Sequence record: MW812341.1 | DNA: 64,000 nucleotides | Direction: 5' to 3' (one strand) | Shown: piece after piece, positions 11,984 through 16,743 of the stretch | Position numbering within the stretch: position 1 is the stretch's first letter | Layout of the letters: every line of letters starts with the position of its first letter | The notes under the pieces: model-generated | Seen by the model: the letters and a program-made list of their open reading frames with translations, nothing else | Database searches by the model: none | What the model was told of the DNA's origin: nothing | Position numbers and translations under genes: made by a program

Positions 11984-12049
11984 TGGTTTTTCCCTGGTGT
12001 TGGCAAATTGGGTTTCGAACACAAGAACATGGCAATCTGTAAAAAAATA

Positions 12050-12427
12050 TTATTTCTTGGTATCCGCCTTCAGGTACCCAGCGAAGTGTGGGGTACGGAC
12101 ACGAGCTTCGGTACGAAGTAATTCGCCCACCGCTGCAAGTTCCGGATTTTCATGCGGAGTCATCACACATACCGGGATTCGGAAATGCCCATGAGCTGGT
12201 CGGGTCATACCGACAACCGCCATCGCTTCCCCGTTGGGGAATGGCTGGAATGCAACCGTCTCGAAAACTTTCTCGAGGCAGGCAGCGTGCAAGTGGTGAA
12301 TCTTCGGACATCCGGTACGTAACCAGGTGACAACCTCGGCGACAGGCACCGGCTCACCGTTACGTGGGAAGAATACCTCGCAAGGCATCCGCGTTGGCAG
12401 TAGCTCTTCAAGCGTCATGGCGCTCAT
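12050..12427 (-). CDS. hypothetical protein (125 aa)
   Basis: AGGAG RBS before ATG 12427; ORF-track extension to 12625 runs into structured non-coding region. Confidence 0.6.
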   Translation of the reverse strand: MSAMTLEELLPTRMPCEVFFPRNGEPVPVAEVVTWLRTGCPKIHHLHAACLEKVFETVAFQPFPNGEAMAVVGMTRPAHGHFRIPVCVMTPHENPELAAVGELLRTEARVRTPHFAGYLKADTKK

Positions 12428-12439
12428 GGTTATCTCCTG

Positions 12440-13135
12440 GTTAGAATTTGGTTCAGCGATGTCCGGGCACTTCGCAGTGTGCAGACACCCCCCTCTCGTC
12501 TTTCCGAGCCGCCAAGACCAATGGACCACCTCGCTTCGGAGATATCCCCCCATCCCAACGGTTCTACACGCTGGGAGTTTTTCGACGCAACGCCGAATCT
12601 GGTCGCACCCCAGGAGAACGCTCACCGACGATAGGCCAGTGGTAAGTCACTGGCAAGGACGACGGATGACGGTCCGCCTGGGCAAGGTTCTTCCTGGAGC
12701 TACCACGGTACCGGGTCGGGTGAAAGCCCGACTGGAACCTGAAACTCTTGAACATACTAAAACAAAATCACGTCGGTGTTAGGTCGAACGTATTTTCGCT
12801 TTGTCGACAACCCTGGTGAGGACTCTCGAAAAAGCGCCCCGAGTCGAGGCGAACACAGCAATCCAGTGCAGGATGAGAAAAATACCCGCTGTGGGATCTG
12901 CACAGCGGGACCGTACCCGGCAACCCTCGCCAGAAAATCGCGTCTCACCCTGTCGTGAGGTAGGCTCGAAAAGCCTCCTGGCCAAAACTACCAGCCAGGA
13001 GTGATTTGGTACTGGCATCAGTCGAGTTCTGCCAGCGAGCATAACACTGGGAAAATCTGTAATTGGATTTCCGCTGGTTATTTTTTAACCAGGTCCTCGG
13101 GAAGCTAAGGACTCGTGCGCGCCCACACGCCCGCG
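12440..13135 (+). ncRNA. candidate large structured ncRNA (about 700 nt)
   Basis: Dense hairpins: GTCGGG-TGAAAG-CCCGAC, CCCGCTGTG/CACAGCGGG, CTCCTGGC/GCCAGGAG, GCCAGT/ACTGGC, CTGGTTA/TAACCAG; GAAA and cUUCGg loops read on +. Confidence 0.5.
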
Positions 13136-13139
13136 ATAG

Positions 13140-13235
13140 TAATTTATAACTCAAAGAGTTTATTAGTATTAATTATATTTAATTATTATCCCTACGGGAT
13201 AATTATAATTAATATAAATATATTCTTTTAAAAGA
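13140..13235. repeat. AT-rich imperfect inverted repeat (candidate origin/unwinding element)
   Basis: ATTATCCC-TAC-GGGATAAT core with extended AT-only imperfect arms. Confidence 0.6.
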
Positions 13236-13716
13236 TCCTGAAGGAGACGGACGCCTGCGCGTCGCGACTAATAGAAGAGATTTTTCCCCTACCCCCGGAG
13301 GGGTAGGGTAGATAGAATATAAGTAACTGTTTTTAAAAGAGAATTTTTTTAAATTGATTAAAACTTAGCCAGCTGAAGGCTGGCAGTGTAATCGATTAAA
13401 AAGTAACCAAATCCAGGACAAACTCACCAAGATTCGTTTGTCAGATTTCCCTGTTTTAAATCTCCAATTCCGCAAAGCGGTACCCAGATTTAGATCGGCG
13501 ATTCGGCGCAGTCGGATTGCACCGGGGTCGGAACAGCGGGTCGAGGATAGCGCGTATCGTTCCTGTACGGCGCTGTGGTGCATTATCTCCCCCTTGGGAA
13601 CCCAAGTGTACCGGGTTAGGGTATCGACGCATTCTGAGCGTTTCTGTGGACTATTTTGCACTGGCCATTTTGTAACCGATTATTGATTAAAAAGTGAGCA
13701 GTACCAAGGCTTGGGA

Positions 13717-13752
13717 CAAAAAAAAACAGGGAGCCGAAGCTCCCACTTTTTT
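13717..13752. terminator. bidirectional intrinsic terminator
   Basis: A-run + GGGAGC-CGAA-GCTCCC + T-run. Confidence 0.8.
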
Positions 13753-13754
13753 GA

Positions 13755-14405
13755 TTAACGCAAACGCTTTCCAATCAACGCATTAGTGAATTCGTAGCTT
13801 GGATTCTGGTCAAACGCTTCTGCCCATGCCTTAGTCAGGCAGCGAACAGACATGTCCAGGGATTTGTCTACGGCCACACCGCTCATCAGGTCAATGGAAA
13901 GTTGAGTCACACGCTCGACAGGCTCGTCTTTCATCGCGACTGTCATGTGGTTACCGACAATCGTACAGACTATGTTGTCGAAGCTCTCTCCGAGTAGACA
14001 TTTCTTGATAATCGGATTTTCTGTATCTTCGATGCGGTATTCTTTAAACGGTATGCTAATACGAGATTTGAAATTGGCGGACACTAATCCCCACCCCGCA
14101 GGCAGGGCTGGTTCCTCACCTTTGGTGAAACATTGAACATAATCAATCTCTGGATGGAACTCTCTCACCAGGGCCTCTGAAACGGGCAGTGGCATGTCGT
14201 GGGTGTAAAGCACGGTTGCACATCCAGTTTCAATTAAAACCATCGCACAGCGTACCACGTAGCCGTCTTTGGAGACATCGACGTATTGTCGAAGGTCATG
14301 ACCGCGTGTACTGTTTTCGATTTCAATCATAACCTGAATATTCTGCATGATGCTTTTGGACAGGGTGAAGTCACGGATAGATTCTACTGGGATGAATTTA
14401 GACAT
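13755..14405 (-). CDS. hypothetical protein (216 aa)
   Basis: ORF with AAGGAA RBS downstream of early promoter. Confidence 0.85.
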   Translation of the reverse strand: MSKFIPVESIRDFTLSKSIMQNIQVMIEIENSTRGHDLRQYVDVSKDGYVVRCAMVLIETGCATVLYTHDMPLPVSEALVREFHPEIDYVQCFTKGEEPALPAGWGLVSANFKSRISIPFKEYRIEDTENPIIKKCLLGESFDNIVCTIVGNHMTVAMKDEPVERVTQLSIDLMSGVAVDKSLDMSVRCLTKAWAEAFDQNPSYEFTNALIGKRLR

Positions 14406-14475: not shown

Positions 14476-14496
14476 CCCCTAGGTAATATATATCTG
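14476..14496 (-). promoter_or_regulatory. putative early promoter
   Basis: Minus strand CAGATATATATTACCTAGGGG contains exact TATATTAC. Confidence 0.7.
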
Positions 14497-15615: not shown

Positions 15616-16743
15616 CTATGATATCGGCGACTGTGTATGATCGACGTATCGGAGACCAATCTTCACGACGTTATACCCGGTTGCGTAAAACAGGTTACTG
15701 TCCACGCAGCGGATAAAAGCCTCAGGATCTAGGGCATCTATCGCAAAGTCAGAATCGAAACGCCATTCTTCCGTCTTGCCATCACGTTCTAAGGTTGCAG
15801 AATACAACCCCTCCTCCGCTCCTTTACGGAAGGCGAACAGATTCAAGTCGGTTTCGTCGTCACGTCCCACAAAGACCCCATCACAAACGTTTATTTTCGC
15901 ACGACCACAACGGGTGGCGGTCAGCAGCGCCTTTTCCTCCGGGGTGTTCGATATAAACAGATAGGGGCCATGGTATGGGGGGACGACTCCGTCACTCATG
16001 TTATCGAGTGACACGCAGCGGTACACAATAGGTGACTTGTAATTGCATAAGCGATTACCGTCAGTGAACATTGTGTACTCGACCTTTACGGTTGCACCGA
16101 TAAGGTCTTCGGGACGCAGGCCATGTTGGGCCAACTGTCCCTGTACGCGACGGGAAACCATAGACGATAGGAAGACGTGATTCGATGGAGTACGTAGCAC
16201 GTACCCGTATTTGGTGCAATCGATCACCTTGGCATCCATTCGTCTTTCTGGTTCCATTCGGTACTTCACGCCATCTTCTTCAAGAATGAAGATAGATACC
16301 GCAGGATTACGGGACTGGGTACGGATAGTATCCAATACCTCACACGCCCGTAAGTTTAACGGCTCAATCACATTGACATGGAATGGCAGGGTCTTCTTCG
16401 GAACCTGCCCAAACGACGTCACGGTGATAGTCCGTAAAAGCGGATCATCGAGCGTTGGATTGGTGGACATCCACCAGGTGAGCCAACGTGATGTGTTCTG
16501 TGGAATCACTTCGGTGGAATAAACAATCACCGAACCGGTAATACCGGCTTCATTCAACAGATTCGCCAGCAGCGTATTCGCCGCTGAATACGTTCCATTA
16601 TCCAGGATAGGTTGACCCCCAACTTGCTGCAAGGTACACATGCAGCCGTGTGGTAGTACCCACATGGTAACAGACTTTGTGCGGTCATAACCGGGGGTGG
16701 CGTACCGTCGACGCCATACAGCTTTGCGTTGTAAGTTATTCAT
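15616..16743 (-). CDS. hypothetical protein, possible degenerate ATP-dependent ligase-like fold
   Basis: 375 aa; segment LIGATVKVEYTMFTDGNRLCNYKSPIVYR resembles ligase OB-domain end; no intact KxDG. Confidence 0.7.
   Translation of the reverse strand: MNNLQRKAVWRRRYATPGYDRTKSVTMWVLPHGCMCTLQQVGGQPILDNGTYSAANTLLANLLNEAGITGSVIVYSTEVIPQNTSRWLTWWMSTNPTLDDPLLRTITVTSFGQVPKKTLPFHVNVIEPLNLRACEVLDTIRTQSRNPAVSIFILEEDGVKYRMEPERRMDAKVIDCTKYGYVLRTPSNHVFLSSMVSRRVQGQLAQHGLRPEDLIGATVKVEYTMFTDGNRLCNYKSPIVYRCVSLDNMSDGVVPPYHGPYLFISNTPEEKALLTATRCGRAKINVCDGVFVGRDDETDLNLFAFRKGAEEGLYSATLERDGKTEEWRFDSDFAIDALDPEAFIRCVDSNLFYATGYNVVKIGLRYVDHTQSPIS

Follow-up and report, generated by a model that had tools for sequence, protein, structure and literature searches.

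The region at positions 12446-13040 of the analysed sequence probably represents a minus-strand gene for a large structured RNA belonging to a previously undescribed family (we put the probability at about 0.65). The sequence, hereafter the window, comprises 64,000 nt of the genome of the Erwinia jumbo phage pEa_SNUABM_9 (Machinavirus; MW812341.1; 247 kb), window positions being record positions minus 62000. Comparative analysis showed the family to be a large structured RNA encoded once per genome in SPN3US-like jumbo phages of the genera Machinavirus, Seoulvirus, Erskinevirus and Wellingtonvirus, and composed of a conserved core and variable inserted domains. The candidate gene is delimited as follows:

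12446..13040, minus strand: predicted RNA body of ~595 nt, conserved in four phage genera, with ends placed from motifs.

The candidate gene lies in an unannotated gap (12428-13754), which is wider than the hairpin-dense block of 12440-13135 delineated by the original prediction and is flanked by two minus-strand genes, 12050-12427 and 13755-14405. No Pfam match was found for either of them, and the sole match of each is a PHROG of unknown function (phrog_20200 for 12050-12427). All genes between approximately 6000 and 16743 are encoded on the minus strand, including 16 tRNA genes located 1.3-6.4 kb downstream of the RNA locus. The same run contains a conserved neighbour of 375 aa (15616-16743), which carries the annotation putative DNA ligase in two related genomes, and in related phages the terminase large subunit is encoded a few kb beyond it. 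Two further stretches of 0.8-0.9 kb lacking long ORFs were observed outside the window, at record positions 145949-146878 and 158986-159801; these might be additional non-coding elements.

A syntenic unannotated gap of 1.0-1.8 kb was present in every SPN3US-like phage examined, in all four genera. The whole gap is homologous by sensitive BLAST, with islands of very high conservation, and its blocks are conserved in 52 phage records, 12 viral contigs and 9 metagenome contigs. The viral and metagenome contigs were recovered using the 28-nt core of the RNA (12490-12517) as a DNA search pattern and, where long enough, proved to be phage genomes of ~240-250 kb; no relatives were found when viral contigs were searched via the neighbouring protein. 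A covariance model of the RNA core detected a single copy in the 247-kb genome of pEa_SNUABM_9. It had no match in the Derbicusvirus phages Phobos, CR5 and Derbicus, though these share the neighbouring genes, which may reflect either absence or divergence. At the DNA level the RNA core is conserved far above any flanking gene, and the next gene downstream varies or is missing among relatives that retain the RNA; 12050-12427 itself is variably present among close relatives. A search of public sequencing runs turned up no RNA-seq run with the locus; the wastewater and isolate runs analysed consisted of contigs, probably DNA, and a relative in one of them retains 12444-13744 but neither flanking gene. 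Because of this, and because ChrisDB and Caitlin lack 12050-12427, the block is best regarded as a module in its own right. As the RNA is retained in every lineage while the surrounding genes turn over, it is probably important to the phage. Our search of the literature on non-coding RNA, promoters and intergenic regions of SPN3US yielded no description of the element.

The non-coding character of the block, already proposed from the letters of the sequence, was borne out by the substitution pattern. Compared with ChrisDB, pEa_SNUABM_4 and Caitlin, substitutions in the three codon phases number 22/14/20, 19/16/13 and 50/43/48, respectively, with no codon periodicity, whereas the neighbouring genes used as coding controls give 4/0/11, 15/4/48 and 53/39/95, the usual third-position excess. 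Indels are mostly 1-2 nt long, and the small ORFs annotated at the block in relatives (ChrisDB gp287, Huxley gp278) have an odd composition and are frame-broken in other phages. A protein-coding or pseudogene origin of the block was therefore rejected, on the even substitution phases and the broken frames. A 20-codon frame starting from an invariant UUG (12515-12453) was also considered; a one-base insertion in the loop of the core hairpin in Seoulvirus breaks it and rules out a conserved reading frame. No tRNA or tmRNA was detected in the block. The Rfam comparison that had been suggested together with the original prediction was performed in two ways: with gathering scores as cut-offs, cmscan on the full window yielded no match in 12440-13135, GOLLD and ROOL included, and cmscan of 12000-14000 at E up to 10 still assigned the block to no family, giving only chance-level matches in the AT-rich part.

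Evidence for a conserved fold comes from several alignments. The block folds better than dinucleotide shuffles, with z of -3.12 on the minus strand and -2.36 on the plus strand. An alignment of the full 680 nt from eight Machinavirus sequences gave 114 consensus pairs, and compensatory changes were seen in 25 of these; in wide MAFFT alignments register shifts in the variable parts spoil the consensus folding there. For the 3' 140 nt, a covariance model with a hand-curated structure was built from 20 phages, and 21 sequences were realigned to it. In this core, standard pairs occupy 94.8% of cells (81.2% with shuffled partners), both sides have changed in 18 of 31 pairs (12.0 expected), and the covariation score is 0.436 (0.199 in shuffles), the observed values being reached in 0 of 500 shuffles. 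When the partners were slid by 1-3 columns, the covariation score was at most 0.10. The helices listed in the original prediction are in the sequence, most of them are conserved, and several covary, namely CCAGGAGAAC/GTTCTTCCTGG, GCCAGT/ACTGGC, CCCGCTGTG/CACAGCGGG and CTCCTGGC/GCCAGGAG. The elements of the predicted RNA, from its 5' to its 3' end, are:

12975..13001, minus strand: hairpin d, 13001-12993 pairing with 12983-12975; close relatives show compensatory changes, from CG to UA and from UA to CG.
12885..12909, minus strand: hairpin e with a U-run, 12909-12901 pairing with 12893-12885; terminator-like; compensatory UA to GC and UA to AU changes.
12851-12835, minus strand: GC-rich hairpin; the stem sequence differs by genus, the pairing is always kept.
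Within 12797..12851, after the GC-rich hairpin, minus strand: conserved run CUUUUUCGAG, a U-run block that is nearly invariant.
12836-12820 with 12813-12797, minus strand: helix g; both-side changes in 5 of 9 pairs.
12601..12710, minus strand: three-way domain, closed by helix 12706-12702/12603-12599 plus 12700-12686/12621-12607 and enclosing hairpins m and n.
12677-12662 and 12654-12635, minus strand: hairpins m and n, respectively, of the three-way domain.
12554..12597, minus strand: two-hairpin segment, 12597-12591/12587-12581 and 12575-12569/12560-12554.
12522..12543, minus strand: hairpin H3; both-side changes in 4 of 6 pairs; its 3' strand and tail (12532-12523) complement the 3' tail of 16S rRNA.
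12490..12517, minus strand: nearly invariant 28-nt core, including a small hairpin (12508-12505/12498-12495); near-identical in all phages found.
12456..12491, minus strand: terminal G-rich hairpin at the RNA 3' end; both-side changes in 9 of 14 pairs; 97.5% of cells pair.

In the three-way domain both partners have changed in several pairs, one example being the U-A to C-G change that separates pEa_SNUABM_9 from ChrisDB, and in the second hairpin of the two-hairpin segment (12575-12569/12560-12554) this is the case for 5 of 7 pairs, with 96.6% of cells pairing. The order of these landmarks is fixed across the family and the inserts are variable; predicted RNA lengths range from ~280 nt in pEa_SNUABM_6 through ~600 nt in pEa_SNUABM_9 to ~825 nt in Seoulvirus. 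An insert was also found in phage Kwan, where 620 nt with a homing-endonuclease gene of the HNH type occupy the apical loop of a variable hairpin, the helix being kept; a near-identical metagenomic phage lacks it. An int-alpA-like motif precedes the HNH gene in the Kwan locus (1205-1800), scoring below threshold (31 bits at a cut-off of 35.8). Phage pEa_SNUABM_6 (positions 264-401 of its locus) lacks ~140 nt of the RNA, with the three-way domain and two hairpins gone, from which it follows either that the removed parts are dispensable or that the RNA is impaired in that phage. The deletion seems to be bounded by two similar short repeats.

The RNA appears to be encoded on the minus strand, in the same direction as the tRNA cluster and the genes on either side. 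The block had been predicted to be antisense to its neighbours, on the plus strand, on the basis of GAAA and C(UUCG)G tetraloops; this tetraloop argument does not hold, and the minus strand is indicated by the gene context, the wobble pairs and the orientation of both the promoter-like motifs and the terminator-like hairpins. In an alignment fitted to the minus-strand model, which favours G-U counts, the supported pairs of the core comprise 91 G-U cells and 8 A-C cells; as a result, pairing extends to 94.8% of core cells on the minus strand, compared with 80.9% on the plus strand. A plain MAFFT alignment covering the whole RNA gave consensus fold energies of -272 for the minus strand and -216 for the plus strand, and pairs predicted on both strands contain 31 G-U versus 10 A-C. 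One G-U pair of the terminal hairpin is invariant in 20 of 20 distinct sequences, hairpin 12597-12591/12587-12581 includes a G-U pair that turns into an A-C mismatch if read on the plus strand, and the hairpins resembling terminators, with their U-runs, are oriented in the minus direction. A plus-strand RNA, antisense to its neighbours, in which a hairpin would mimic the 16S rRNA 3' tail, has some points in its favour, namely the better-than-shuffled folding of that strand, the GAAA-type loops that read on it at two hairpins, and the bidirectional terminator at 13729-13744. However, the G-U excess and the invariant G-U mean that such an RNA would bear conserved mismatches, its alignment fold energy is weaker, and motif scans found no copy of either of the two promoter classes described below on the plus strand of the gap; we consider plus-strand transcription of the RNA very improbable.

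Transcription signals were sought by a whole-genome motif scan. The word TTTTTTAC-N13-18-T[A/G]TG occurs in at least 22 copies, several of them closely 5' of a ribosome-binding site, and copies of this class bracket the RNA locus:

13040..13062, minus strand: promoter-like motif P1, with TTAC at 13062-13059 and TATG at 13043-13040; predicted start near 13040.
12018..12050 (~12044; record 74044), minus strand: second promoter motif P2, found by the whole-genome motif scan.

P1, in summary form TTTTTTAC-N14-T[A/G]TG, recurs at an equivalent position in all 20 homologues. Its T-run is weakened in pEa_SNUABM_9, where it is degenerate (AATTAC), and TGTG replaces TATG in Seoulvirus and Erskinevirus. 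In phiKZ, late promoters are marked by a TATG at the start site, which it overlaps (PMC7598289); the class to which P1 belongs ends in a similar TATG, the start at P1 being predicted from sequence. P2, which is predicted to drive the downstream genes, directly follows the terminal hairpin in most relatives, among them those without 12050-12427, and in pEa_SNUABM_9 lies beyond the inserted gene 12050-12427. The RNA would thus have its own promoter of the TTTTTTAC-N14-T[A/G]TG class, starting at ~13040, and would end at the G-rich terminal hairpin (~12446), just before P2 in most relatives. In pEa_SNUABM_9, 12050-12427 sits between the RNA 3' end and P2 and may be co-transcribed with the structured RNA; because of this extra gene, the RNA may double as its 5' leader in this phage. 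A second word, composed of an A-rich run, CAGATAGATATTAYC and GGTGA, is likely an early promoter. It has ~25 copies in the record, almost exclusively minus-strand ones (those in the window include 1784, 4823, 14494, 16787 and 30619), and none in the gap; the nearest copy, at 14494, serves the gene upstream, whose end is at the terminator 13744-13729.

The part of the gap upstream of the RNA (on the minus strand) contains a palindrome and further hairpins:

13136..13240, no strand assigned: AT-rich imperfect palindrome with arms 13153-13181 and 13200-13228, centred on CCCTACGGG.
13616-13600, 13480-13470, 13442-13417 and 13384-13368, minus strand: upstream hairpins, the last followed by a U-run.

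Inverted AGGATC/GATCCT and tracts of alternating CG/CA border the palindrome, which is a conserved feature of four genera and probably a DNA element separate from the RNA. The short words AYTTTTTAAYC and TCTTTTAAAA are nearly confined to the gap within the 247-kb genome, in an iteron-like manner (13080 on the plus strand, 13394 and 13685 on the minus strand; also 13224-13235 and 13331-13340). The same restriction to the locus was observed in phiEaH2 and partly in SaP7. A general promoter role of these AT-rich words was rejected because they occur almost only at the locus. The palindrome and the repeats look like a DNA site that might serve as an origin, for packaging or for protein binding. 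The stems of the hairpins conserved on the minus strand of 13240-13720 differ between genera and still pair, and they seem to covary. They may belong to a second structured RNA or to a longer form of the same RNA; accordingly, the transcript may be longer than predicted, or there may be more than one.

Three other explanations concern what the conserved structure is for, and of these control in cis deserves the most attention. The RNA could be a long structured 5' leader acting only in cis on the tRNA cluster and the downstream genes, through their stability, processing or expression, and the arrangement in pEa_SNUABM_9 suits this idea, as the downstream genes and the 16 tRNA genes are all on the same strand and the ribosome-binding site of 12050-12427 is ~20 nt past the terminal hairpin with no promoter between. 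In most relatives, however, a full P2 motif stands directly between the RNA and the next gene, the RNA persists where that gene differs or is absent, and no flanking gene approaches the core in DNA conservation; a purely cis-acting leader thus seems rather unlikely. The original prediction had offered a primer or R-loop RNA tied to the adjacent palindrome as an alternative, and such transcripts are known: RNA II of ColE1 and the oriF and oriG transcripts of T4 serve as R-loop primers. The locus shares with these systems a structured transcript of ~500-600 nt beside an AT-rich element and a G-rich segment near the 3' end, the G-run being invariant. If the palindrome and repeats were the origin, the conservation in four genera of a palindrome with CG/CA tracts and GATC sites, the iteron-like confinement of the two words and the neighbouring gene annotated in some relatives as a putative DNA ligase would also fall into place. 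The predicted promoter, however, is on the downstream side of the palindrome and is directed away from it. The idea therefore fits poorly: an origin-primer transcript runs from its promoter into the unwinding element, and here, by motif inference, the transcript would not cross the AT-rich element. Moreover, there is no GC-skew switch at the locus, and extensive covariation over ~600 nt exceeds the needs of a primer. We therefore regard a replication primer as improbable.

Least likely, along with plus-strand transcription, is that the hairpins act in single-stranded DNA, during replication or packaging, rather than in RNA. The locus is ~5 kb from the terminase gene in relatives, it coincides with the point at which many authors cut genome records, and the palindrome and repeats adjoin it. 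The frequent and partly invariant wobbles are nevertheless better suited to G-U in RNA than to G-T in DNA, and promoter-like motifs bracket the region on the minus strand. A gene for a structured RNA thus remains our preferred reading of 12446-13040.

A possible function of the RNA is suggested by hairpin H3. The 14-nt 3' tail of 16S rRNA (taken from E. coli rrsH) finds in H3 a complement of 10-13 nt, which is present in every lineage and is split by 1-2-nt indels in some of them. In each of the 20 homologues, the tail forms its best duplex with the whole RNA at H3, 15-22 nt ahead of the invariant core, and the energies range from -17.6 to -25.5 kcal/mol. None of 200 permuted tail probes reached the observed mean of -20.6 (permuted mean -13.4, best -16.2) or the observed positional agreement of 12/12, the ribosome idea having been formed after inspection of the sequence. 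In one genome, 9-10-nt matches to the tail with G-U allowed were found at 42 sites, as against 62-82 in shuffled genomes, and are not rarer than chance. The complement is much longer than the ordinary ribosome-binding sites of pEa_SNUABM_9, which have ~5-6 nt (AAGGAG), and is predicted to be mostly base-paired within the RNA. Shine-Dalgarno sequences masked in hairpins are found in translational riboswitches and RNA thermometers, and H3 likewise holds a strong 16S-tail complement in a hairpin with a tail-like partner strand; in contrast to these elements, no conserved reading frame follows it. The complement was also considered as a functional site of translation initiation; it is present, but the frame starting at UUG is unconserved and the substitutions follow no codon pattern, and as the short frame that follows is not conserved, H3 is not an ordinary ribosome-binding site. 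Instead, the folded RNA would contact the small ribosomal subunit through this conserved, largely masked complement adjoining the invariant core and, in the later stages of infection, would bind ribosomes or act as a decoy. Contact of the RNA with the 30S subunit in such a role is a tentative suggestion, to which we give a rather low probability.

Among known RNAs, the closest counterparts are GOLLD and ROOL, large structured RNAs of phages and prophages whose function is unknown. Like them, the RNA described here is several hundred nt long, phage-borne, non-coding and located near tRNA genes, and has an intricate conserved fold with variable inserted domains; it differs from them in belonging to jumbo phages of enterobacterial hosts and in its conserved 16S-tail complement. 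The absence of any Rfam match at E up to 10 means that there is no evidence of homology to either. The expectation that the block encodes a large, structured and non-coding RNA, similar in size to GOLLD and ROOL and matching neither, was thus supported by both the covariation and the empty Rfam search. Being structured, non-coding, phage-borne and close to tRNA genes, the RNA falls into the loose class of large phage ncRNAs next to tRNA genes, which is not a family.

What is new is an RNA family with no Rfam match and no description found in the literature. Large structured RNAs without known function are rare, and each of them has opened new biology. The present one sits in the model jumbo phages SPN3US and Asesino, and a genetic system exists for SPN3US. 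Our analysis provides its strand, predicted ends, a covariance model, testable helices and the hypothesis of a 16S-tail contact, as well as the early and middle/late promoter words of pEa_SNUABM_9. It also singles out the palindrome, together with the locus-specific repeats, as a candidate site of replication origin or packaging. A nucleus-like compartment has been reported for both SPN3US and Asesino in a review (PMC13282480). It is conceivable, if doubtful at present, that nucleus-forming jumbo phages of the SPN3US type make a dedicated RNA of 300-800 nt that would capture or steer host ribosomes by means of a masked, extended complement to the 16S tail. If true, this would be a phage-encoded, RNA-only ribosome effector.
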